From assembly GCA_047495785.1 (NCBI GenBank), contig JBLDXI010000024.1, positions 1,240,001 through 1,304,000 on the forward strand: DNA of 64,000 nt, written 5' to 3'. The position numbers and the translations under genes were made by a program. This DNA comes from Lepidodermella squamata (taxonomy: Eukaryota; Animalia; Gastrotricha). The notes beneath the pieces were generated by a model. The model worked only from the letters and a program-made list of their open reading frames with translations, was not told the DNA's origin and searched no databases. Shown piece after piece: positions 32,498 through 60,110 of the stretch (the first letter of the stretch is position 1; each line of letters opens with the position of its first letter).

Positions 32498-35400
32498 ATG
32501 GCAGGTCGCGCATTCGCGTTTCGTTCTGCCTCTGAGGATCGTAAACAATTTGACTACGATAATAATGATTTTAGTTACCACGCGCCGCCGGTCGCTACAT
32601 TAAGTAGTTTAAAAGCCGCTCTACTACCGAAACCGCAGTCGATCGAGATGTCGTTCTCGATGTTTAAGGAGAACTTCTCCTCCGGCATCAAGTCGATCAG
32701 CCGCCGGTTAAGTTCGTCCGACATTCCGTCGGATGTTCAGGACGATCCGAATCAACCGCAGCAACAGCCGGGCCAGGCGGCAGCGGCTGCGGCGAGGCCT
32801 TATTACCAGCAACAGGTCGCGCAGTCCGGCAGCCAGCAGCAATTATCGCAGCCGCAACAGGCGCAGAGCCAACGGCCGACAAATTTGCCGACGACACAAC
32901 AGCCGGCTCAGGCGACGTCGAAAATGGCGAGTGCACCGGCCTCGCCGCAGCAAACAGCTGTTCCGCAGTTTGCTCGCGGGCTCTTTTCAGCGGCTAGCAA
33001 TTACGTGACGGCCGCGGTGGGGTCTGGAGGACCAGGTGGGAAGGATGGTGCGAATAAGGGCGGCAAGGTCGTGCTGGTTGTCGATGATGAAGGCAACGAC
33101 TGGTCGCGGTTTTTTCGCGGCAAGAAAGTTAACGATCAAGAAATTCGCCTCGAACAGGTTGGACCTATTTCTCATTCATCGGATATTTTTTTATTGTTAG
33201 GAATAGTTTAATTTTGGGTTTTGAAGAAAAAAATATCGTCATTGGGCTAATGAAACCCGCTAAGTCTACAGGAAAAATCCTATGTACTTAGCGGGTTTCA
33301 TTAGCCCAGCGGCGATATATTTAAAATTCCTCCTTAATGAAAAAATGCGAATTTTTCCGCATCAGTGTTTTCTATGGTTCTGGTGCTCTGGGTTACTTCA
33401 AACTTTCAGGAATTTGATTTTTGATTTTTGAATTTCGATAGCAAATTAATTCTCATTCTAATTCGTCAGCATACTATTGTTTCAAAATTTTTGAAATATA
33501 GGTATGCGGCATATTTTCGTATTTTAAGGAGCATTTAAAATTCTAGTGGTTTTGAAGTACATCTCGCAAGCTGGCCGCTAATTAGCTCAATGGCGGTGAG
33601 ATCCATCGGTTAGGCATGATTAAGACAAATTGAGGCATTTCCAGGGAGCTCGAACTCGAAGCCTGATTTTTGGAAATCTCGTGTTGGAAACCAACGTTTA
33701 GGGCGTTCACTTGATACACCCAAAAATGTATTCGAATTCTCGGTCATTAATAGATGATAGCTGAAAAATGACTAGCTATAACCAGCTGATATCTATTCAT
33801 CATTTCGACGATTTTTAGACAATTTTCAACTTTTACAATTCATATTATAAATTTTATAAATTTTATAAAAAAAATCTGGTGAAAAATTTGCTCTTCAACA
33901 AACCTTCAAAAATTCTCAAAAATCATTCCACCGATTTTTTTTAGTTCCAATGTTATCCAATTTTATCCGAGATTATTTAGAGCATACCTTTTTATTATAC
34001 ATTATACCATTTATTATATTTTTCTAGGCTGAATTTCGAGAATTGCATTTGGTCAGCATGCCACGCGGTGAGGTCGTCGTTGAAATTCACGCTCAACGAG
34101 GCGGCGCGACAGTTCAGCGCTACTTCAAGCCCGATATCGTTCTAGTTCGCCAACACGTCCTCAACGACCAACCAGGCCGGTTGGCTAACGACGACAATCG
34201 GCGGCTGATTGTCGGCCTTGACACCGCTGGAATGCCCGCTGTCAACTCTCTCGCCTCGATTTACAATTTTTCCGATAGAGGCTGGGTGGTAAATTTGAAA
34301 TTGTCGGAGAAAAATCGCTTTTTTTACATGTCATTTTTTATTCAGTACTCGAACTTATTAAAAATTCAACGCCGATTTGGTGCTGAGCGCTTTCCCCTCA
34401 TCGAGAAATCTTTTTATGCAAATTATCAAGAATTGGTGAGTCAATCGTGAAAGAAAATATCGATTAACCAACCCATTCATTATTTTTAGATCGAATGCCC
34501 GCCTACATACAAGGGCCCGCTCGTGATTAAAACCGGCAATGGCCACATCGGGCTGGGGAAAATGAAATTGGACGCTGGACTGGACATACGAGAAATCGCC
34601 CACCTGTTGATGGGCAGCACAACGGGCGGCCAGTGCTACCTGACCGTCGAGCCTTTCATCGAAGCCCGAGCTGATATTTACATCATTAAAATCGGAGCTG
34701 CTTATCGTGTTTACGCGTAAATTAAAATTTGAAAAAAATTGAATTTATTTTAATAATTTTATTAATTTTTTAAGGCGAAGATCAGCGCACGGCCACTGGA
34801 AGGCGACTGTTGGTCCGCAGCAAATGGAGACATTACAGCTGAATGATCGTTACAAATTTTGGGCCGATCAATGTGCTGAGCTGTTCGGCGGCCTTGATAT
34901 AGTCGCAATTTCAGTGATGCAGGCGAAAGATGGTCGCGAGTTCATTGTCGAGGTTAAAGATTCAACTGCACAATTGTCGCAAGAGGGCATCCACGACCCG
35001 GAGCGCCAACTTATTGCCGATTTATGCATTTCGAAGCTCAGCTACTTTTCGCGAGATACTACGCTAAGGTAAGATGCGGAAAAATCTCAATTTCGCACAT
35101 CACAATAATATATAGTGAAAAATCACGCTTGACCTAATTTAATTGAATGAGGCGATGAATGAATCATAAAAAATGGGTTTAATCTATATAATAATGGCTT
35201 CATTATCGTCCGTAGAAATGCGCAGCAATTTCGAAACAGGTTTATTTGTTTGAAAAACTTAATTTGTATGCGCTTCAATAGACGCATAGTTTGCCCTATT
35301 ATTGCGACTTGATGAATTTTTTCCGAACGCTTTTCCACATTTATGATGACAATTTTTTTATTTTTTGAAATTTTTCTTCTTCTTCATCTTTAACTTTGTG

Positions 35401-40282: not shown

Positions 40283-42207
40283 ATGAGCAATAAAATGTTG
40301 ACCTTGAACGGAGTTTTCACGCGAGAAGCACCGCCATTAGCCGATGAGTCATCACTTGTTTCCCTAATTGACGGCAATGACCTGCCGCCGAGCAATGATT
40401 TCATCGAATCAGCGCAAACTGCGGGTCAATTTACGCAGCAGCGAGTTCAAGTTTTATGGCTGCTCACCGAAACGCCTGACCTAGATGATTACTCCGCACC
40501 GCCGATTTCTTGCTACACCCTGTGGCTTATCAACGAATCGTCGCAGAAATGCAAAAAATGGTCCGATGCGATAGTCGAAGCGCTGAGTTCAACATGCTAT
40601 CCAAGTAATAATTTTTCGATTTTTTTAAATTCTATTAATTTTTTTTAAACAGCTCTAGCTCTAAGCTTTTTATTTCGAAATGGAGTCTCAACCGGTATAG
40701 CTGCCGAGGAGAAAATTTCGTGGTGGCGAAATTTGCTGGGGTCACTGATAAATTTCACGGATTTATCGCGGGATTTTCGAAAAAGCATGCTCGAAAATGA
40801 TGCGGTAGGAACCCTTATCGACTACCTGTCAAACAGCTCCGTAAAACAAGCTGCCGTCAAAACCAAGGTAATATTCTTATTTTTATCAATTTTTTTAATT
40901 TTAATTTTTTAATTTTTATTATAGGCTCACGAAGATATTTTATGCATGGTGATGGCAATTCTCCTTAACCTGGCGAAAATGTCGTCAGGGAAGCAATTTT
41001 TCAACAAGGCATCAGCGGCGAAAATTCTTCAAAAATACCTCGACTACCCTGGGGATGTTTACATCAAAGCTGTGTCAGCACTTTGCATTGCCGTTACGAC
41101 GATTGACAACGACGAAAATGCGAAATGGCTGGTGAAGAATAAAATCCCGTCTATGCTCAAGTCATTCTACGAGGAAGGTGCCACATCGGCGGATAGAATG
41201 TTCGAAAAAATGATCCCATGCCACGAATTCATCGACGCCCTGAAAATACTGGCGTTAAACGAGGGTATCAAAGATCAGCTGGTTAAGGAAGATATTCTCA
41301 AAATAATTTTGGATCTCATAAATTCTAACCGATCTGGACTGGAACAATATCGAGGTATCGAGCTGCTGTGGACGCTTTGTTTCGGCAAAACTGGGGTCGA
41401 AAATTGTAAAATGATTGCTCAAAATCAAGAAATTATCGCAGGCTTGAGTCGAATTTCCGGCGATAGTAAGGCCTCAGAAGACTTGCGGGATCTTGCGAAA
41501 AGAGCGTCGGCCTTCATCGCCGATTACGAATCAAAATTGCTGAATAATATCGCGAAAATACCAGCCAATGAAACGAGTGTGGATGGTCCAATTTTTATCA
41601 GTTACGAGAGTCGGTATCAATATATGGCCGAGAGGATTCGGGATCTTTTGGAGGCAAATGACTTGGATGTTTTCATGGAAAATCAAGCCGCTATTAAGAC
41701 CAAGTAATCCTATATTTATATTTCAAAAATTAAAAATCAAATTTTTTTCAGCATTCTTGAAGAGATTTCGAAAAATGTGGAAAATGCGAGTATTGTTATT
41801 TTAGCTTTCTCGGAGAGTTATCGCAGATCGGCCTGTTGCAGAACTGAAGGTGAGTCAGAATGCCTAAAAAACTGAAGAAAATATAATAATTTTATTAAAG
41901 CCGAATATGCATCAGCCCTTAACAAGAAAATAGTCCCAGTTCGAGTTGAAAAAGGGTAATTATTATATTTTATTCCAATTTTACTTCTTTCACTCCCGAT
42001 TTTTCTACAAGGTATACAGCTGATGGCTGGCTAGGCACACTGGTCCCGGCTAAAATGACGATAGATGCGTCCGAGGAAATTGAAAGTTTGTGGATGGACA
42101 AATCTGGCTCGGATTTACTGACTCGAATCGTTGCTCTGAAAACTGGTAAAATTTCGGCGGAAGAAACTAAACCTGAGTCTGCTCAAGGTCGATGCTCTGT
42201 TCAGTGA
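40283..42207 (+). CDS. ARM-repeat + TIR domain protein 1 (exons 40283-40604, 40653-40867, 40925-41703, 41752-41849, 41901-41955, 42012-42207)
   Basis: Helical ARM-like repeats (ILLNLA, ELLWTLCF); TIR motifs IFISY, SESYRRSACCRTEAEYA, KKIVPV, YTADGWLG; ends in CSVQ. Confidence 0.88.
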
Positions 42208-42393
42208 TAAACTCATCTTTCATCTCTAATTGCTTGAGAAGCACCTTGGTTGAAATAGCGAATATCAATTTAGTTGTAAATTTATTATTCAGTATCAGTT
42301 CGTCAAGTAATAATTGTTCGATAAGTTTGTGTCAGTTCACCTGACCTCTTTTCTTCGTATGTAATAAAAACAGAGGTCAATGCGTTCAACGAG

Positions 42394-44329
42394 TTATTGC
42401 TCCTTCTCGCAATCATGTTTTTGCGAGCCATCTTCACACTCGCATAGCATAACCGAGCATTTGCCCAAATTTGCGCAGTCACAGATATCTTTTTGGAAAA
42501 AATAGAAATTTCAATGAAATCGATAGAATTTACAGATTTTTACCCCTGTCGCAGTTGGGGCCGTCGCGAAATTTGCTGAAGCAGGAACATTCATCTGGCG
42601 CCGTGCAATACTTTCCAGACGGGCATCCATTCGAGCACATGGCTGAAAGAAAAGTTATGAACTCGTTTTGAGAATTATCAAAATGGCTATATGTACGCCT
42701 GTCGCAGTAGAGGCCAGTCCATCCGGGTAAGCAATGACAAGCCGGCGAGAGGGCTGAGTAGCAGAACCCATGCGCGCAAATACTAGGGTTGCATTGAACT
42801 AATTAAGGAGTAAATAATTATTAAGGAGGTGGTTTTGCGATGCGAATTACCGAGTCCTGACACACGAAGATCTACCAACTGTTGTTTTTGAGGAAAAGCT
42901 TGGTTATCTGTAACAATCGCTAGGACCAAATCATCCCGAACTGGCAAGGCTGAGGCGAATTTTACGGTGTAAAGCGTGAAACTTGGAACAGTTGGCGAGC
43001 TGTACAACACCTTGCGAAAAGAATTGAATAGGCCAATAAATATCTTTAAATAATCGGAGTGGATATTCGTACTTAAATAAGTACGCGTTTTTTGATATTC
43101 GTACTTAAATAAGTACGCGTTATTTGATATTCGTACTTAAATAAGTACGCGTTATTTGATATTCGTACTTAAGCAGCTTTCCGCTTACGTAATATTCGAA
43201 ATTTTTCGACCATAATATTCAGCTTTTAAAACTGATTAAGAATCATATCTCACCCAGGAAGCTGAGATAACTTGGACTTGTCAAATTTGCATCCAAAAAC
43301 ATGAAATTAGTGTTGGAATGCTCAGGAAACCTAAAAGGTCCTGAACCTTAGATCCAACTTGATGAAAATAGGGAGAAACTCTAGATTTTGCCATCAAATT
43401 TGACAAGTCCAAGTTATCTCAGCTTCCTGGGTGAGATATGATTCTTAATCAGTTTTAAAAGCTGAATATTATGGTCGAAAAATTTCGAATATTACGTAAG
43501 CGGAAAGCTGCTTAAGTACGAATATCAAATAACGCGTACTTATTTAAGTACGAATATCAAATAATGCGTACTTATTTAAGTATGAATATCAAAAAACGCG
43601 TACTTATTTAAGTAGGAATATAACGACCCTTAAATAATATTGCATGCTCACCGTGACATTGGTACCATTTTTCAATGTCATCACGATATTAAACTCGCCG
43701 CTCGACATTAGAGTTCGGTAATTTCTCCCGTCATTGATAGACGTTAGTTTCCAACTTTCAGGATTACTGGTAACGGTCGGAACAGAAGTGACTAGACTCC
43801 CGATCCGGTTGTACCACAACGTGAACCATATTCCCATGCCAATGAAACTGGAGTCATTCATCGAAAATCCAACGTTTTTATAATTGAGCGAGCCTTCTGG
43901 GATGACAAGCAGCCGTAAGCCCTTTGTGCCGTTGATGCAAGTAAAACTGAATGTCGCATTGATGACAAAATCTCCGAGTCCAGAGGGAAATTTCTTAACA
44001 GATATTACTCATGTTTTGCTAGATTTTTATAGAAGGTAGACTGTTTACCATTTTAGATACCATGTAGCCGCTCTGAGTTGCTAAACACGTTTCGTTATTT
44101 CCTCCGAACAGGATATTTTTGTTGCTTTGCAACATGGGCCCAGCCCAATTGCTGCCAAGTTTCCAATCCGAGACTATTGAGTGAAATTCAGGTTCTTTTC
44201 AAGGTATTTACCTCTTCGAAATTCGAACTCACGCTTTCCATCATGAGGGTATGACAGTTCTTTGACATAGTGGCAACATGCCGAGAGTAAAAGGCTTGAC
44301 GCTAGGCTGAAATAGAGGCTGAAATGCAT
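42394..44329 (-). CDS. Secreted L-type-lectin-like + 3 EGF-like protein 1 (7 exons)
   Basis: Signal peptide; beta-rich domain (WKLGSNW, LGDFVINATFSF, FIGMGIWF, NDGRNY, LPVRDDLVLAIV); EGF repeats CAHGFC...CHCLPGWTGLYC and CTAPDECSC; stop after the third Cys module, no TM. Confidence 0.8.
43055..43629. mobile_element. Foldback/Mutator-type long-inverted-repeat element inside an intron
   Basis: Near-identical arms of about 230 bp (43062-43289 / 43395-43620) built partly of 32-bp tandem units, about 105-bp spacer, 9-bp TSD TTAAATAAT (43046-43054, 43630-43638). Confidence 0.9.
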
Positions 44330-45373
44330 TTCTTCTTCGCTGAACGTTGTTATGTCGGAAAGTAAGACATTCAGAGAAAATCGCCATAAAGAAACCTGCT
44401 ATTTTAGATCACTTCATGAAAGATGCAATACGGCAACAAGTCAACGCCATTGTTACTCACCAGGCATTTAGCAGCATTGTTCTCGCCCTTCGCTATTCTA
44501 TAGGTATATCTGGTGAGTGCTATCGGGAAATGAGCGCATCGCGCAATACCATTGTGCGTGACATAATTCCTTTAACACACGTGCGTTGAAAAATTGCAGT
44601 AATTTGTTATGCACAATACAAATATAAAAATTAACCCAATAACGTTATGGGGAAATTTTGCCAGTTGTATCTAACGGGCATATTTCCATACTAAGTATAA
44701 ATTGGGTGAAAGCCAGGCTTGCTGATGAGCCGGAGCCCTTTTTCTCATTAAAATCGATTTTGCATCTTACTCTTGGCAATCTGGAGTCAAGTTAAAGACA
44801 TTTCTAGATAAATCGCGTAACGCAGATGAACGTTTTATTTGAGAAAGACTTTCGAGCTATCACAACTTTAGCCGTGTTAATCGCGATAATAATGTGACAA
44901 CTGGTAAAGTATATCAGCCAACTTGACACTTCATTTTTTCCGCAAGGGTCAAGGATCAATATTTTTAGAGGTTTTCAAATTCTTAACCCCGATTGTTTCC
45001 ATTCAAGGTACCAGGAAAGCGAACTTTGGACATGCACTATCTGAGTTCGCATATTTCAAATAGCGCTTACATGCAAGACCCATTAAAAGACCGATCGAAC
45101 GAAAATTTATGATTTCATTGATTGAAGTTTAATAGGAAACCTATATTTATGTGCTGTTTCGAAGTGCAAAAACATCAGCCATTGAGCCGCGGGTTAATTC
45201 GTCCTTTCACACTTCAAGCTATAATAAAAGGCCATTCCTGTCATTCAAATCACCGCTCCTACGTCAATGATAGCAGCCTCCATTTTACGAGCGCAGCAAT
45301 TTCATCAAACGAAAACCCCGAGAAATTACTGCTAATAAACTGTTTCAAGTGCACTTAGCTTGTAGTCAGGATA

Positions 45374-47207
45374 ATGCCTCCGGTCATCGTAAATTGTGGC
45401 CTGTATCGTCGGGAGACTATACCGGAGAGAGAGCCCCTCATTCCGACCTCTTACGACCAAGCATTCACTCCGAATAAGGACATCAAAAGCTTGCAACAAG
45501 CTTTGAGCGTCGCTCAGTCAAGAATCGATTTCCTTACCCTAGCTGTGGATCACTGCTTCGATGCAACGGGCAGTCGAGGGATTTTACGCCAGGCGTTGTA
45601 TGTCATGTGGCAAATCAACTCTTCGCTGAACGATTTCAGCATAGACTGGTTGAAAAGCGGAATAGTTAGCAGCATCTGCTTCTCAAATTTCACGCGTAAT
45701 TCTTCCGAGGAAGGTTTAAACTGTTTATGGAGGATTTTACTTACAGAAACTTATTTGGGGTACCTTTGTTCGAGCAAGGTTTCTCAGTTATGTGACGAGA
45801 TGATCTTCCGTCTGGCTGAGAATTTCTTTAGCTTTCTAATCAATTTTTCTGATCAATTCGACAACTTTCGGGAGGTTCGATAGGCGTTTGATTATCGAAT
45901 TTTCTTGAATTATTTTTACAGGCTCTATCGGCCAATCGAATTCCCGAAGTTTTGACCAGATTCCTGAGACCTTATGACGAGTTAATTGAGGCTGGTGAAA
46001 CCAACAAGCGTTTAGAGTTCATCGTCAGTTATTCACTGGCCTTGCTCTTCAATCTAACGAAATCACCACCAGTCCGGAAGAAACTCTCAGATTCGGAAAT
46101 CCAACCCGTGCTGATTCCTTATTTGGACTGGAAGGGTTGCAACTACATTCAAGTCTTAGCTGTTCTCAGCCTTGCTCAATATGCTATCACAGAAACCAGT
46201 GTTACCCACCTTAACAACCAGGATGTGTTACCAAAAATTGTCGAGTACTTCACAGCTGCCAACTTGTGCGAAACGAGAAGATATCGGGGAATATCAATAT
46301 TAGAACTAACCTCTTGCCTGACCTCTGTTGCCTCTACTGGAGATAAGGAGGTCCTGGTCAAAGTTGGCATTCACGACGTAATCCGGCTCCTCCTTAACAG
46401 CACCATCGAAGACGAAGTTTCTTCTGGGATCGACCTCGCCAAGGCCCTAACATTCAATCCAGCGAAGGAGATGACCGATATCGTGAAGAGTTTGTTGGGC
46501 GACGAAGAATGCATGGCACCTCTAAAAGAGCTGTCAGAAGCTGTTCACACGCCAGGTGAAATTAGGGAAAAAGTCGACGACCTGTTGAATTTCATGAAAC
46601 GATGTTCTGATAAGAAGAATGAGCCAGCTTGTGTCAGGAAACGCACCAACTCAGCACCTTCCCGAGCCTCTCTAGAAATGAGAAACTGGCGAACGAGATC
46701 GCTAAACCAGCCTCCGAAGCCCCTCCAATTCAAAACAAAGCCAAGAGTTTTTCTAAGCTTTCACAAGCATGACGTGAAGGTTGTTCGAAGGATAGAGAAG
46801 CTGCTGTTCGATAACAATTTCGATGTGATAAATTCTGTGCCGGCCACTGATCACTCTCATTGGGCAATTGCTGAGGAGAATATGCCGTCATGCCACTTCG
46901 TAGCCATTTGCCACTCAGAGGCTTACAATCTGTCCCCGTCTTGCCGCAGAGAGGCTGAATTAGCGAAACGGCTCCACAAGAAGATAGTTTCAGTCCGTAT
47001 CGAAGAAGAGTAAGCTCATATTCAGCTGTTAGTGATTTACCTTGAATATTTATTTTTCTTCATAGCTATGATCCTGAAGGATGGCTAGAAGAGCTGCTGG
47101 AATACTCGGCTTTAGTGCACGTGGAAGCAGATGAGAACTTGCTTCTAAAATCGTCATCCAATGGAGTTTTACTCCTCCAACAACTAGCTAAATTATTCGT
47201 GGAATGA
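45374..47207 (+). CDS. ARM-repeat + TIR domain protein 2 (exons 45374-45874, 45922-47009, 47066-47207)
   Basis: Paralog of protein 1 (LINFSD/LINFTD, LLFNL/LLNL, YLDW/YLDY); TIR motifs VFLSF, SEAYNLSPSCRREAELA, KKIVSV, YDPEGWL. Confidence 0.88.
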
Positions 47208-47594
47208 ACAGCACAAATATCGCGTGAAATATTTATTTTCTGCCTGAGACCTCAATAAAATACCTGCTATTGTTTCCACCTTTCGAAAATGGGCTGAATT
47301 TATGTCTTATATGCCCGGAGAATATGCCGGATATGGAGAATATAATATAGTGAAAATATGACAGATTCAGACCACCAATTGAATGTAGAATTTTCCCGCG
47401 CGCTCCAAGTTTTGCCTGCAAAAATTCGAATAAAATAGCGCGAGCGAATGCTAGTTCCTTTTGGCAACATAATTCAGAATTGTTGCTATTGAAGATATTG
47501 TTATCATATGTGAAGATATGCTCTAATTACTGCAATGATTAAGCTAGTTGAACATGAGTGTCAGTAATCCTGGTATGTTATAACTTCTTGAGGG

Positions 47595-48919
47595 TTAAAT
47601 TCCGCAATCGTGCCTTGGATATCCATCTGCGCAATCGCACATCATCGCGGAACAACGTTTTGCGATGTTACAGTCGCACAATTCTGCAAGTCAAGCGTAA
47701 ATTAATTGCTCAGTTATACCAAAGAAACTTACCCTGGTCGCAGTTGGGTCCTTTCTTGAAGCGGCTAAAGCAAGAACACTCGTTCAACCCTGTGCGGTAC
47801 TGTCCAGGTGGACATTTACTACCAAGGGCTGGAAATAGAAAACTAGGTCATAATAAAAACCTTCGCTTGAAGAATTACGCAAATCGCAATAGGTGCCAGC
47901 CCAACCCGGCAAGCATTTGCAAGCCGTTAGCGAAGAGCAGAATCCATTTTTGCAGATACGTGGATCACATGCGACTGAAAAATCAAAATGTATTCAAACA
48001 GAGGATCAGCTGAATCATTTTATCTTACTAGCATCAGAAACACGTAAATCTATGACCTGATGGCGTTGGGGGAGAACTCGATTGTTGCTTGTAAAAGCCA
48101 CAACCCAATCATCGCGAGTAGGCAGTGCTGTTGTTGCCTTGTAGTTGAACGCTGTGAAGGTTGTGACGTTCCAAGATGAATAGTCCATCTGTCGAAGCAA
48201 CAATCAGATTGGTTATAAGGCGAATCTTGCAAACCAACCTTGAAGTTGATGCCATTGGTGAGGGTGATGATCACGTTGAATGTCCCGCCGGACATCAGGT
48301 CGCGGTAACTTCTTCCATCGTTCCAGGCGGATAGTACATAGCTGCCCAAATCGCTAGCGTTTGTCGGCGTTCCGGTGACTAGCGTAGCAATACGGCCAGA
48401 ATAGGGGGTGAACCACACGTTCAATCCTATGAATGCTGATTCGTTCATGTAGTAGGTAACAGCGTTGTTATCTGTCAGCATTGGCTCGGGAATTATGAGT
48501 AGACGTGATCCCCAACTTCCACCGCAACGGAAATCAAAAGTTGCATTGATGACAAGATCGCCGAGGCCGGAGGGTAGTCTCTGCAATAAAATTGTCGAAA
48601 ATTGAATGAGCCATGTGACTTTGTGGTATGATACTAACCTTCTTCGACACTAAGTAACCGTGAGTGTTTGAATTGCATTCAGTGTTGCCACCAAGCGTTA
48701 TGCGATTGTCTGGCTGTAGGAACGGGCCTGCCCAGTTCCCGCCGACTTTCCAGTTGTCAACTGAAATAGGAAATGAAGAAATATAATTAATCCGATCGGC
48801 CTGGTGATTAATTTTTTACGGTTTCCATCCCCTAAGTACGAGTAGTCGAGTTTGACGCCGCCGAACACAGAACATGAAAGCGAAAGCAGGAAAAAGATTG
48901 ACGGCAAGACGAAGTTCAT
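47595..48919 (-). CDS. Secreted L-type-lectin-like + 3 EGF-like protein 2 (7 exons)
   Basis: Paralog of 42394-44329 with the same exon layout: LPSGLGDLVINATFDFRC, FIGLNVWF, NDGRSY, LPTRDDW, CKNGFC...CLPGWAG. Confidence 0.8.
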
Positions 48920-50480: not shown

Positions 50481-51959
50481 ATGTTAGCCACTACTGTATT
50501 CGTCTTGCTTGCAATTCAAGGTATTTCACACTCTATGAAGCAATAATCGCGTATTTACTTTTTCCTTTATTTAGACGCGTCAGCTCAGATAACAACGCCA
50601 GCAGTTGGTACGACTTTATCGACTGGTACGCCAACTCAGCCAGCTGCTCCTAGCTCTTCAAGCATTCCAACCTCAGCAGCAGGGGCTCCGACTCAACCAG
50701 CAGCGGCTCCAAATAGCTTTTCGACCATTCAGACCTCTGCGGTTACACCAACTTCTATCACTGCTTCTAGCAATCCAACTCGTACAAGCGCCTCGGTAAC
50801 TCCTGATCCTAACATCGGCGATCCATACCCGTCAACAACTTCCGAAGACTTGGTTGCGCAATGCAAGGACATTAGCCCGAAAATCCGATGCCCCCGAAAC
50901 AACGACCAGCCTAATCCTATCAACTTCGTCTTCATCATGGACAGTTTCGGCGATGTCACTGATGCAGATCAAACTGTTTCGTTCACTATGATAATGGTCC
51001 TGAGCTGGAATGTCACGACATGCAACGCTTCAACCACTGGCTCTGGTCTTACTAAGAAGGACAGGATTATGGTGTCTGACGTCACAGAAGTCTGGCGACC
51101 GATAACCTACTTCACGTCAAGCGCCGACGATACGAGATTGAAGAACGACAACATTGCTGATGACATGGACATCGTTTTCATACCCGACACTCCTAACAGG
51201 ACGCTTCAATTTTACTGGCAAAAAACCGGCCCTGCTGTTGCTAGCTGCGATCTGAATCTGAAAAATTTCCCAATGGATGTGCAAAATTGCACCTTTGAAT
51301 TCGCCCTGAAAGAAACAGTTAAATACGTGTATTTCAAAGACATCGACTTCTACCCGCCTGATTTGGGCGATGGCGATTCCTGGTACTCTTTAGGCAGTTC
51401 CTTTTACACTACCACCGAAGGCTATGCCTCTGATTCCGTGCTGAATCGACAAGGTGTTAGTCGTGCTCGTTTTTCGATTCGAATGCGCCGCCGGCCAGCT
51501 TTTTACTTCTATTCGTTGCTAACCCCTAGCTTCGTTCTCGCGACGTTAACCCTGGCATCGTGGTTGTTTGACAACTCTACAGCTGAAAGAGCAACATTTC
51601 AAGCCACCCTGCTTCTAACTCTGTTTGTGGTGCAGTCCGATTTCATCAATGCAATGCCTAAATCACCCACTCGAATTTTACTCGCTGATTATTTGTTTTT
51701 CTTAATCGTTTTCACCGGCGCTTGTACGTTGCAATCAATGTTCATGTTTTGGCTAGCAAGTGTCTACATGCCGATGGTTGAAGATAGGGATGAAGATGAC
51801 GCCAAGCCATGCATCGATGGCGAGAGAAAGTACAAATGCTGCAAAGGCCGTTTAAATATTAAGGTGGTTCGACTTTTTGACCTGTTTTGTTTTTTGATCG
51901 CTCTTATCGCTTTTACTATCTTTACAATTATTACTTTTTCTTTGACCCTGGCGCCGTGA
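50481..51959 (+). CDS. Divergent Cys-loop LGIC subunit D with mucin-like N-terminal extension (exons 50481-50520, 50575-51959)
   Basis: Signal MLATTVFVLLAIQDASA, about 85 aa S/T/P/A-rich tract, VWRP, Cys-loop CDLNLKNFPMDVQNC, RRRPAFY, four TMs. Confidence 0.9.
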
Positions 51960-54295: not shown

Positions 54296-55521
54296 ATGAT
54301 CGCTTTTCACATGCTATTTTTGTTGATATTTTACTCAAATCTTGAAATTTCGATTGCATCAATAAGCGAAGTGTTATATATCAACAAAGGCGCTAACAAT
54401 TCACGCGAAACATTCGAGCCAATTGATTTCCTACTGAAAAGATGTCCGATATCAGCGGCTGTGAGAGACCCGGGCCCGATATCACGCATCAGCCTTCAGC
54501 TAAGACTCGATCGATTCGTCGCAGTCGACGAGCAAAAATCGTCATTTTCATTCATTGGAGCGCTGATTTACACCTGGACTGTGCCATGTGTTGCTAGGGT
54601 GTCTAGAAGCCCTGAGTGGCCGTTGAACTGGACTGAAGATATCAGTAAAATCGCCGATCCTAGCCAAATTTGGACGCCTATGGATTTTCCTTTCAAAGAT
54701 GATAGATTGCTCTCAACTTCAGCTACGGTTTCGCCTTCTTCTGGAATTTTCACCTCAATTCTGAATTATCAATTTTCAGCTGATTGCGACATGAATTTGA
54801 TGAACTTTCCATTCGATACCCAGAGGTGTTCGGTTAAATTTAAACACTACCCATCGCCGAACATTGCCGTGAAATATGAACGAAATTCGAGATTCATCGG
54901 CGAAAGTGATTATTGGGACATTTTGAACATGAAATCTGCAAGCGATGCTGCATTGACTGAATTTCAAATAGTCTTGAAGCGACGATCTCAATATTTTGTC
55001 TTGCAATTCATTATTCCTAGCCTGGCGCTAAATATCCTCATGACCGGAATATTCCTTATTAGAGGTTAGAAATTTTTCAAATTTATATATAGATTTTTCT
55101 CAATTTTTATTAATTTTAAGGCGAAACTTGTGGCCGTTTATGTTTGTCCATGGGATTAATATTATCGAATATCGTCATTTTTGTGAGTTGGCAATTAACA
55201 ATATAATAAATTTTTATTATTTTTTCTGATTTGAAGGGACATGCGCTTAATTTTGCTCCCAGATCTCCGAAACCGACAGCCGGCTGCTACTATCTACTCG
55301 GCTCAATTTTCTACGATTCGTGCTGCTGCGCTTACGCCATTTTCGCAGCGTTTTTCGCGTCTAAGAATCGAGCGCAAGAGATTGTTTATTTACGACCATT
55401 TAACGGCTTCCGAGCTCGTCCTGTGACGAGAAGTTTCTACTTTGACATTATCGCTTTTAGTGTATCCTCAGCCATTCTTATAGCTTTTAACATCGTTTAC
55501 TTCTCAGTTCTCGCCTCGTAA
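54296..55521 (+). CDS. Divergent Cys-loop LGIC subunit E (exons 54296-55064, 55121-55182, 55237-55521)
   Basis: LDRFVAVDE, IWTP, Cys-loop CDMNLMNFPFDTQRC, LKRRSQYF, four TMs after splicing. Confidence 0.88.
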
Positions 55522-56647: not shown

Positions 56648-58008
56648 ATGAACCGGTTACTATTTGGTACTTTTATCATTATCGGCTTTCTTTTGGCGCA
56701 AATTCCAGCTCAAATGCCATCGTATCGCCGGAATGGCGAGGCTGCTTTCGATCCTTCGGCTTACCTACTATCAAAATGCCGACTGAGCCCTAGCGTTAAT
56801 TCACCTGAGGAATTTTCCGGCTCGCGGACGAAGGTTCATTTGTTCTTCAAACTCGATCGATTCGTCTCACTCGACGAAACTCTGGAGCAAACAGTCATCG
56901 GCGGCGGTATTAGCTACCGTTGGATTGTTCATTGCGTTAAAAGGGCTGCCCACACCCAAGAATGGCCGTCGAATTTAACAACAATGCCAAATACTGCGGA
57001 TCGGGAGAAATTCTGGTCACCCCGATTCGGCCATGCTAATGCTGTTAGCGATTATTCAATGCGGAGTGAATTCCACCCGTTTCTAAGCATCCTACCTCAC
57101 GAAGGGCTGTTCGTCGGCCTTCAAACCGGGACATTTGTCTCGTTTTGCGACGTTAATCTACGCAGATTTCCGTTTGATGTTCAAATTTGTAAAATCGAGC
57201 TGTTGCTGCTGCAATCGATGAATTTTGTTGAAATAACGCGTATCGGCTTTCTTCACACCAATGCTACGTCGCCGATGGGCGATAACTTCGGGTGGACTTT
57301 TGTTGGCAATGCGACCGAGGTAGTCATCACGCATGACCCGCCAATGGGCTACTTTGAACAAGCCGTGTTTTCTTTCACGCTGAAACGGCGCCATCAGTAC
57401 TACGTCTTTATGCTGCTGACACCGAGCATTTTCATCAGCATCCTATTTCTTGGGCTTTTTCTCATCCCCGGTAAGAAAAAATCTACAGAATTAAGGAATT
57501 GAAAATTAAAATAAATTATTAGATTTATTTACATTTTATTTTATGAAATTTTAAAATTTTGAAAAAATAATCAATTTATATTTTTTGAAATTTTTTAAAA
57601 TAATTTTAGGTGACGATGCCTCACGAATACTTTACGTTGTTTCACTCCTATTGTCTCATCTCGTCTTTCAGGTCGGTTGAAGTTTTTGTTCGCAATTTTC
57701 ATGATTTTTAAATTAAAATTTTCTATTTAATTTAGGATGAACTTTTCGATGCTATGCCCAAGGCGACTCGGCCGACAATAGTTGGCTACTACGTGTTCGC
57801 GCTGAATATCTTCACGTCAACGCTATGCCTGTACACCATCATCATTTACTACCTGTTTCGAATAGACTCGAGAAATTTCACGCGAGAAGTCTACGTTGGC
57901 TCGTCTACCGTAATGCGGATAACGCTGATTGAAATCGCCGTCGGAATATTAGCCATCACTGCCTACATTTTTATAAATATTTTCATCATCTGCCTCTACA
58001 TGACTTGA
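56648..58008 (+). CDS. Divergent Cys-loop LGIC subunit F (exons 56648-57470, 57610-57671, 57736-58008)
   Basis: LDRFVSLDE, FWSP, Cys-loop CDVNLRRFPFDVQIC, LKRRHQYY; same intron positions as subunit E. Confidence 0.9.
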
Positions 58009-58358: not shown

Positions 58359-60110
58359 ATGTTTGCAAAATTTGGCTTATTTCTAGCATCGATACTCCCA
58401 TTTTTGGTCGATTGCCAAACCCGAGATCCGAACAAGTATTGTTTCGAATGTGCCGGCATGCGCAATCACAAAGATTTGTACGCCGACCCGGATGATTGCC
58501 ACGGCTTCTACCAGTGTCTGTACCTCGGCAACGGCGAGGCGCGCGGCATCAAACGCCAGTGCCAGCCTGGTACATTTTGGAACGAAGAATTCCTGAACTG
58601 CGTACCAGAGGGCGATGAACCGTGTCGGGATAAGTGCCAAGATTTGACGATTCAGTCGCGAGGGTGCCACGCTGACCCGACAAAGTGTTCCCGTTACTTC
58701 ACATGCCAGTTCAGCGTCAGCTATCCGTTTTGCTGCCCGCCAAAAACTAGCTTCAACGAAACAACTTGTCAATGTGACGACTCGGAAACTTGCGCGGATC
58801 CTTGCGATCAGGTTTTTTAAATTTTCGCTATAAATTTAAATTTAAATTTTTTAAACTAAAATAAATTGAATTTTTAAATTATTTTAATTTTTTTTAAGTT
58901 TCAGAATAAAATTAACAAGTTTAAACAAAAATTAAAATCCTACGTTGATTGAATAATTTTCATAATTCAATTTAGCCTCGTGTTAATATAATTTTTTTCA
59001 TTGTTTTTAAATTGAGCCGGAACCTCAATTTTAGTGGTGCAAATTTAATAAGGGGCATATGCAAATTATCCATTATTGATTTTTCTAAATTTATTCGATT
59101 ATATTAGAACTTCAAATCAAGCGTTTCGACAACCGTATTGCCGCCTCAAAATTACGGCACATACTGCATTGATTCATATGGCGCCAAGTTGAAACCCGCC
59201 GCCACCCCAGCGTCGTTCTACCTGGTCGATGCCGATGACGTTGCGACTGAGACACCCTGCGCCCTAGGTACCGAGTTCAGTCTAGTCGATTGCGCCTGTT
59301 CGGTGCCAGTCGCCTACGACGCCGGTCCTATTGGGCGAAATATCAAACTCTGCAATGTTTTCCTGCCATTTGAAGGCGACGCGCTTGATCGCGGCAAGTT
59401 GGGATTTTGGATTGACGTAGTCGAACCGGCTCGCCTATCGGATCAAGCGGCTGCTCATGGCAAAGGCTCTCTCCGAATTCAAGGCCCGGATGGCAGATTT
59501 GAAATTCCGGGTGGTAAAACGACTAATGACCCTGAATTCTCAGGCTGTTTCTTCTTCAGGTAAAAATATTTTGAAATTCAAACTAAAAATAACTGGAAAA
59601 ATTATAGGTGTGCTGAGCCTCCTTGCTCTTACCAGTCTGGTGGTTTGGTATCGAGGCGCTCTTGCGTAGATTGCCCAACATTCGGCTACGTGCTTTCGCT
59701 CGATAACAGCAAGTTGAAACTCGATCTATTTTGCAATTCGCCGGACCCAGCTGTCCTGGAATTTCCCTTGCCACCTGCACCATCGGACAACAATGGCTTC
59801 CACCAAATCTGTATCGCTGCTGGAAATTCAACCCAATCACTCTATGTCAACAACGTAAGTAACGTTTTTTGCTTCATTTATTGTTAATTTCTAAAGAATT
59901 TAACAGAGGTTGATCATTCAACTACCCCTAACTTGCTTGACAATGGTGAACGCCTGCCCGGCCGCTATCGGATACGACACTGTCTACGGGTCGTTTGATG
60001 GCTATGTCGACGATTTCATGCACTGTTCTTATGACATTGGAGCCGAAGGAGTGGACGCGCATTATCGCGGGGCCCAAGCTCTAATTGCAGCTGGAATGTT
60101 GAAGGCTTAG
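58359..60110 (+). CDS. Secreted chitin-binding type-2 (peritrophin-A/CBM14) + LamG/ConA-like protein, Pif-like (exons 58359-58811, 59108-59559, 59608-59854, 59907-60110)
   Basis: Signal peptide; DPDDCHGFYQC...CQPGTFWN...C, DPTKCSRYFTC...CPPKTSFN...C and a third partial module CALGTEFSLVDC; LamG-like FLPFEGD...FHQICI...LYVNN...FDGYVDDF. Confidence 0.85.

Follow-up and report, generated by a model that had tools for sequence, protein, structure and literature searches.

Origin of a twofold convergent gene pair

A gene pair that occurs twice in tandem, with an intracellular armadillo repeat (ARM)-TIR gene (A) lying tail to tail with a gene for a secreted protein (B), raises the question whether the two genes work together or are neighbours by descent only. 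Such an arrangement (A1><B1, A2><B2) is found in a stretch of 64,000 nt of the genome of the gastrotrich Lepidodermella squamata (C24:1240001-1304000, hereafter the window), for which an earlier note had proposed an innate-immune module of an extracellular glycan or pattern sensor and an intracellular TIR effector. We analysed the window and the 121.2-Mb assembly (151 contigs) from which it comes; all sequence searches and folds were run exon by exon. The double occurrence of the pair is best explained by one old segmental duplication: with a probability of roughly 70%, a convergent A><B segment was duplicated a single time in tandem and both copies were kept, the two genes being neighbours by descent.

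The window is eukaryotic with a GC content of about 41% and introns of about 50 nt. Gene models were assembled from coordinates and then checked by script for frame, splice sites and stop codons (Table 1). Four intact genes were found at the coordinates and on the strands claimed before; the coding sequence of each is in frame, a multiple of 3 and terminated by a stop codon, and every intron is of the GT-AG type with a length of 47-59 nt, except for B1 intron 3 (641 nt). The tandem, twofold tail-to-tail arrangement was confirmed with spans of 40283-44329 and 45374-48919, and no cassette remnants beyond the two pairs were found when the window was scanned for them. The stop codons, which had been placed about 190 and 390 nt apart, are separated by 186 nt in the first and 387 nt in the second pair. 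The 186-nt spacer contains canonical poly(A) hexamers at 42363-42368 (plus strand) and 42286-42281 (minus strand), according to which the 3' untranslated regions (3'UTRs) of A1 and B1 would overlap by about 130 nt. In the 387-nt spacer, hexamers are located at 47254-47259 (plus strand) and 47237-47232 (minus strand), and an overlap of the A2 and B2 3'UTRs is possible as well.

The two copies appear to be old. As had been noted before, the TIR paralogs are unequal in intron number, with five introns in A1 and two in A2; the positions differ in the N-terminal half, and the intron preceding the last exon has the identical position and phase in both genes. The description of both paralog pairs as well diverged was also correct: A1 and A2 share 23% identity over 277 amino acids (aa), B1 and B2 52% over exons 2-7 and 54% in exon 3 alone. 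This bears on the reading that one copy is false and arose during assembly or whole-genome amplification. For the probable source assembly, DNA from a single animal was amplified by multiple displacement, which can give rise to chimeras (PMC11660948), but artefactual duplicates would be nearly identical, whereas the copies found here are 23-54% identical as protein and differ in intron number and content, with each gene intact. The artefact reading is therefore refuted, and we give it practically no weight.

Distribution of the A and B families in the genome

The B family has exactly four members in the genome, all of which are located on contig C24. Over exons 2-7, the identity of B1 with each of the other three is 52-53%; B2 is 75% identical to B3 or B4, and B3 and B4 are 85% identical to each other, giving the tree (B1,(B2,(B3,B4))). 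The ratio of nonsynonymous to synonymous substitution rates (dN/dS) was 0.13-0.21 in pairs of the B family with unsaturated dS. In the 54 kb round B3 and B4 (C24:3704500-3758500) no ARM or TIR gene was found, that is, over at least about 14 kb on either side of B4 and at least 34 kb on either side of B3; the nearest match to TIR_2 on C24 is about 157 kb off. A metagenome scan with the B alignment gave no match, and no B relative was found in public protein sets although a putative ortholog of A2 is present there; gene calling in that assembly may have missed B.

The ARM-TIR family is larger, with at least 17 genes on eight contigs. In the maximum-likelihood tree, for which A1 exon 2 was left out, the A genes of the window were placed as (A1,(C55a,(A2,P0001))), with support values of 98/95 for A2 plus P0001 and 98/96 for the other inner node, and of 78/69 for the inclusion of A1. 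The best match of A1 exon 2 was C55a, too. C55a is the closest paralog of A2; its downstream neighbour encodes a P-type ATPase and there is no B gene. P0001, an ENA protein of 436 aa, comes from another organism and was the sole outside protein retrieved in a word search with an A sequence (32% identity); within this genome it matches A2 best, so that P0001 appears ortholog-like to A2 and the A1/A2 split would, if the tree is right, predate the speciation from the P0001 organism. A metagenome scan with the A alignment gave no match. The remaining ARM-TIR genes, at least 15, have no possible B partner, because the B family has just four copies. Some of them form tandem arrays: five genes on C19 (about 1,129-1,140 kb), two on C33 (about 1,138-1,142 kb) and two on C20 (about 755-760 kb). 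Five array paralogs carry an extra tail C-terminal to the TIR domain which looks SAM-like by eye; no Pfam match confirmed this at E <=0.01. Separately, two almost identical ARM-TIR copies were seen on C33 and C28 (L015 4265-5104; L014 4428-5456; branch lengths 0.003-0.04), which suggests either that a dispersed duplication took place very recently or that haplotypes were left uncollapsed.

One old tandem duplication and its alternatives

The A and B trees mirror each other, which fits one old A><B duplication followed by dispersal of single genes, and pairing is present only where common descent predicts it. According to this history, a convergent two-gene segment was copied once and both copies have since been under purifying selection; A and B would be adjacent by descent, each being retained for its own function. 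After the co-duplication, B3 and B4, which are located 2.4 Mb away, would have arisen from B2 without the partner A moving along, and likewise the A2 lineage would have given rise to C55a on another contig without its partner B.

Several observations weigh against this history. A1 and A2 (23%) are much more diverged than B1 and B2 (52%), so that, under co-duplication, the A genes must have evolved at several times the rate of the B genes. Further, A1 joins the A2 clade with weak support, both being long branches, and an exclusive A1 plus A2 clade was nearly rejected in the approximately unbiased test (p-AU 0.052), a value one would expect with C55a and P0001 as descendants of the A2 lineage. 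Finally, the identical convergent layout and short spacers were kept through saturating divergence, which could reflect selection on the arrangement. A short convergent spacer, however, leaves little room for a neutral breakpoint, and retention alone does not show selection on the layout.

The unequal divergence and the near rejection of an exclusive A1 plus A2 clade also speak for independent juxtapositions, in which B1 and B2 are tandem duplicates next to which A1 and A2 arrived separately as unrelated family members, or in which only one A was co-duplicated. The different intron positions in the N-terminal half of A1 and A2 would agree with separate arrivals, as would the observation that each of the two genes was the other's weakest among the matches listed in the genome searches. 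But the best tree groups A1 with A2, C55a and P0001, A1 exon 2 separately finds C55a, and the last-exon intron is shared in position and phase. Besides, given about 17 A genes in a genome of 121 Mb, it is very improbable that two family members inserted with matching orientation on the same side of neighbouring B genes. With just four B genes in these 121 Mb, a pair that came together by chance twice is not a credible reading, and we regard independent arrival in any form as very unlikely.

The A genes encode ARM-TIR proteins

The identification of the A genes as ARM-TIR genes was borne out by Pfam, by family profiles searched against the PDB and by structure prediction. A2 exon 2 matched TIR_2 (PF13676) with 34.7 bits at a curated cut-off of 28 bits. 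A1 exon 3 contains an ARM-like Pfam match plus the start (first strand) of TIR_2, and a six-frame genome search located the A1 TIR_2 match at 41591-41950 of the window with 33.9 bits. Single pieces of A2 gave no match in a PDB sequence search, but family profiles did: a profile of 17 family members matched Vac8 (2.4e-18), designed ARM proteins, importin-alpha and beta-catenin as well as the TIR domains of Cat1 and RPS4, and a profile of the TIR part only matched Cat1 (1.9e-8), RPS4 (1.1e-6) and MyD88 (about 1e-4). In the AlphaFold2 model of A2 exon 2, which has a mean predicted local distance difference test (pLDDT) score of 83.7, residues 7-229 form a helical ARM solenoid that is followed by a linker and the beta-alpha core of a TIR domain. 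The linker comprises about 35-45 aa and is disordered, with pLDDT <50 over residues 239-269. All top matches of this model in Foldseek were armadillo repeat proteins.

A Glu conserved in the A family was aligned to the Glu of the 'C..E' motif in RPS4 and Cat1, a position at which MyD88 has no Glu; we take this residue to be the catalytic one of NADase-type TIRs. Both genes keep it, A2 within exon 2 and A1 at the junction of exons 4 and 5. No SAM domain was matched by Pfam in any exon of A1 or A2 and, therefore, A1 and A2 are not orthologs of SARM1. Glu-dependent production of cyclic ADP-ribose (cADPR) was described for TIRs of mollusc, rotifers, fish, echinoderm and lancelet that do not belong to Toll-like receptors, and ARM is among the domain abbreviations in the figure on cADPR-producing animal TIR proteins in the same study (bioRxiv 10.64898/2026.04.20.719644). 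Since this activity is reported for many such animal TIRs, NADase-type signalling by the predicted TIRs of A1 and A2 is a reasonable assumption by analogy. The A proteins would thus be oligomerising TIR signalling proteins that may cleave NAD+, as SARM1 and other Glu-bearing animal TIRs do, with the ARM part possibly serving as a regulatory or ligand-binding surface.

The B genes encode secreted EGF proteins with an orphan N-domain

The B genes had been described as secreted lectin-EGF genes; secretion and EGF modules were confirmed, whereas the lectin part found no sequence match. B1 and B2 start with a hydrophobic signal peptide, and no later transmembrane segment is present. Exons 5, 6 and 7, all of phase 1 and about 96 nt long, encode one Cys-rich module apiece. 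The module of exon 5 matched EGF_2 with 24.4 bits in B2 and 22.8 bits in B1 (cut-off 22.1 bits); those of exons 6 and 7 have no Pfam match and show the six-Cys spacing of EGF-like modules by eye. In the second module of B2 (exon 6, 47733-47828) Cys 1 and 3 are gone and 4 Cys are left, whereas all six are kept in B1, B3 and B4. The first and third Cys of EGF domains are disulfide partners, so their joint disappearance looks like a coordinated loss.

The N-domain of about 240 aa is predicted to be all-beta; about 210 aa of it are encoded by exons 2-4, in which N-glycosylation sequons are conserved, together with one conserved Cys each in exons 2 and 3. No Pfam match was found for this domain, even at E up to 10, and a word search with B exon 3, taken within an open frame of 199 aa, gave no match. 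Searches with profiles gave the same picture: no relative was detected among 1.84 billion representative proteins with a HMMER profile, and none among PDB sequences, where antibody noise at E of about 0.7 was all that appeared. The HMMER profile, built from the four exon-3 copies, hit three giant repeat proteins through a short motif summed over the repeats; these hits were judged spurious. A search for Lectin_leg-like (PF03388) over the whole genome led to two other genes, on contigs C21 and C55, and to none of B1-B4. For B2 and, independently, for B1, the ESM Atlas gave scores of 0.85-0.89 to members of the ConA-like clan (TSP_C, DUF1349, Lectin_leg-like and Lectin_legB); scores <0.9 are below threshold and serve as leads only. 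The AlphaFold2 model of B exon 3 alone was all-beta as well, but unusable with a pLDDT of 44. "Lectin" is thus a plausible guess at the level of the fold with no sequence match behind it, and the N-domain is possibly a lineage-restricted sandwich resembling those of ConA and L-type lectins. The B proteins would be secreted and N-glycosylated, with an architecture of the adhesion, matrix or carbohydrate-binding type.

Do A and B form a functional module?

With both proteins described, the proposed immune module can be weighed. In this proposal each pair is a selected unit of function: B, once secreted, would serve as the sensor of a glycan or pattern, with the cytosolic ARM-TIR protein encoded next to it as its co-regulated effector, and overlapping 3' ends or shared chromatin would couple their expression. 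Orientation and short spacers were indeed kept in both pairs, in spite of saturated dS and an A1/A2 identity of 23%, but in a compact genome, spacers of just a few hundred nt present a small target to neutral rearrangement, and selection is unnecessary to account for their retention. From the poly(A) hexamers, an overlap of the 3'UTRs is predicted for either pair, and purifying selection seems to act on each of the four genes; the pairing itself was sought elsewhere in the genome and did not recur, as B3, B4 and C55a are all without a partner gene. The properties of the proteins point in both directions, too. The TIR domain retains the Glu at the catalytic position and the ESM Atlas leads for B go toward lectin-type folds, but B has neither a transmembrane segment nor another connection to its cytosolic partner. 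That no public relative of B accompanies the A2 ortholog is a further, weak point against the module, for which gene calling in that assembly may matter. Finally, the cassettes are flanked by synapsin, three Cys-loop channel genes and a chitin-binding protein, none of them immune genes, which argues that the locus is not an immune cluster. Taken together, we consider the module unlikely. A more specific version, in which selection acts on the pair as a unit, the expression of an extracellular binder of orphan fold is coupled to that of a catalytic cytosolic TIR through overlapping 3' ends, and the unit predates the split from the P0001 organism, is very improbable.

A functional pairing would be a rare case in animals of an extracellular binder and a TIR enzyme linked in the genome; the evidence points to an ordinary old tandem duplication instead. 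Under that duplication the genes remain of interest one by one. To surveys of catalytic animal TIRs, A1 and A2 add two further diverged ARM-TIR genes that bear the Glu and come from a phylum that has hardly been studied. The B genes constitute a four-gene family of secreted proteins whose N-domain, having no detectable relative, is a candidate for a lineage-specific, possibly ConA-like, binding domain.

Neighbouring elements

The length of B1 intron 3 results from the insertion of an element resembling a miniature inverted-repeat transposable element (MITE; Table 1). The element has dozens of matches on many contigs of the genome, the best of which are 95-98% identical, indicating a recent insertion and a recently active family. 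The synapsin exons lie upstream of the first cassette and the Cys-loop receptor genes just downstream of the second.

In the surroundings of the distant B genes, B3 is bracketed by near-identical copies of a small gene (L001 3179-3523 and 6460-6906, minus strand) whose product has a hydrophobic N-terminal leader and is rich in Ser, Gly and Asn. An open reading frame (ORF) near B3 (L001 7986-8612) resembles a small heat-shock protein of the alpha-crystallin type by eye. Beside B4 (L002 6790-9223, minus strand) there are two long intronless ORFs of 338 and 471 aa, which may be genes of a mobile element.

Table 1 Genes, spacers and neighbouring features of the two A><B pairs. Positions refer to the window, except for B3 and B4, which are given on contig C24.
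Feature	Position	Strand	Description
A1	40283-42207	+	Cytosolic ARM-repeat and TIR protein; 6 exons, 554 aa
A1 exons	40283-40604, 40653-40867, 40925-41703, 41752-41849, 41901-41955, 42012-42207	+	GT-AG introns of 48-57 nt
Spacer between A1 and B1 stop codons	42208-42393	.	Convergent, 186 nt
B1	44329-42394	-	Secreted; signal peptide, beta-rich N-domain and 3 EGF-like modules; 7 exons, 339 aa
B1 exons	44329-44233, 44173-44049, 43993-43652, 43010-42851, 42798-42697, 42642-42544, 42488-42394	-	Gene model
A2	45374-47207	+	Cytosolic ARM-repeat and TIR protein; 3 exons, 576 aa
A2 exons	45374-45874, 45922-47009, 47066-47207	+	Gene model
Spacer between A2 and B2 stop codons	47208-47594	.	Convergent, 387 nt
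B2	48919-47595	-	Secreted; 7-exon plan as in B1; 7 exons, 334 aa
B2 exons	48919-48820, 48760-48639, 48580-48239, 48188-48029, 47974-47879, 47828-47733, 47683-47595	-	Gene model
B3	C24, about 3,743 kb	+	Seven exons
B4	C24, about 3,719 kb	-	Seven exons
MITE-like insert in B1 intron 3	43063-43621	.	236-nt inverted arms, 97% complementary; 32-nt subterminal tandem repeats
Synapsin exons	32498-34450		N-terminal and ATP-binding domains
Neurotransmitter-gated ion-channel ligand-binding-domain genes (Cys-loop receptors)	50850-51959, 54296-55069, 56648-57502	+	Three genes in tandem
ORF with chitin-binding peritrophin-A domains	58359-58820		Two CBM_14 domains

Comparison with known systems

The arrangement recalls the RRS1/RPS4 pairs of plant nucleotide-binding leucine-rich repeat receptors, in which neighbouring genes, one encoding a TIR domain, are likewise proposed to act jointly. 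In RRS1/RPS4, however, the genes are arranged head to head with a shared promoter, both products stay inside the cell and the pairing is retained among paralogs and between species, whereas the A><B pair is tail to tail, one of its products is secreted and other members of both families are unpaired. The B proteins are comparable to proteins that combine a ConA-like domain (L-type lectin, thrombospondin C-terminal or LamG) with EGF modules: they are likewise secreted and have a predicted all-beta domain followed by EGF modules on phase-1 exons. Unlike these, B has no Pfam, PDB or HMMER match and the ESM Atlas leads stay below 0.9, and the domain order of thrombospondin is opposite to that of B.

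The A genes have their domain combination and a lineage-specific expansion in common with the invertebrate ARM-TIR and ARM-TIR-SAM proteins ('ecTIR-DC'). They differ in that their sequences are highly diverged, with P0001 as the one outside match, and in that A1 and A2 are without the extra tail C-terminal to the TIR domain. To our knowledge, no gastrotrich member of the ARM-TIR proteins has been studied. Among the ecTIR-DC proteins, family 6 is reported to have ARM-like repeats (PMC6836662). The other close comparison is SARM1/TIR-1, the NADase with the domain order ARM-SAM-SAM-TIR. A1 and A2 are without SAM domains and, hence, without the scaffold for an octamer, and the ARM part of the A family resembles the repeats of Vac8, importin and beta-catenin, SARM1 being outside the 60 best PDB matches of the profile. 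Like SARM1, however, the A proteins are predicted to be cytosolic, with an armadillo-type domain at the N-terminus and a TIR domain with Glu at the catalytic position at the C-terminus and, by analogy, both likely follow a common logic in which the ARM part regulates a TIR domain that acts upon oligomerisation.

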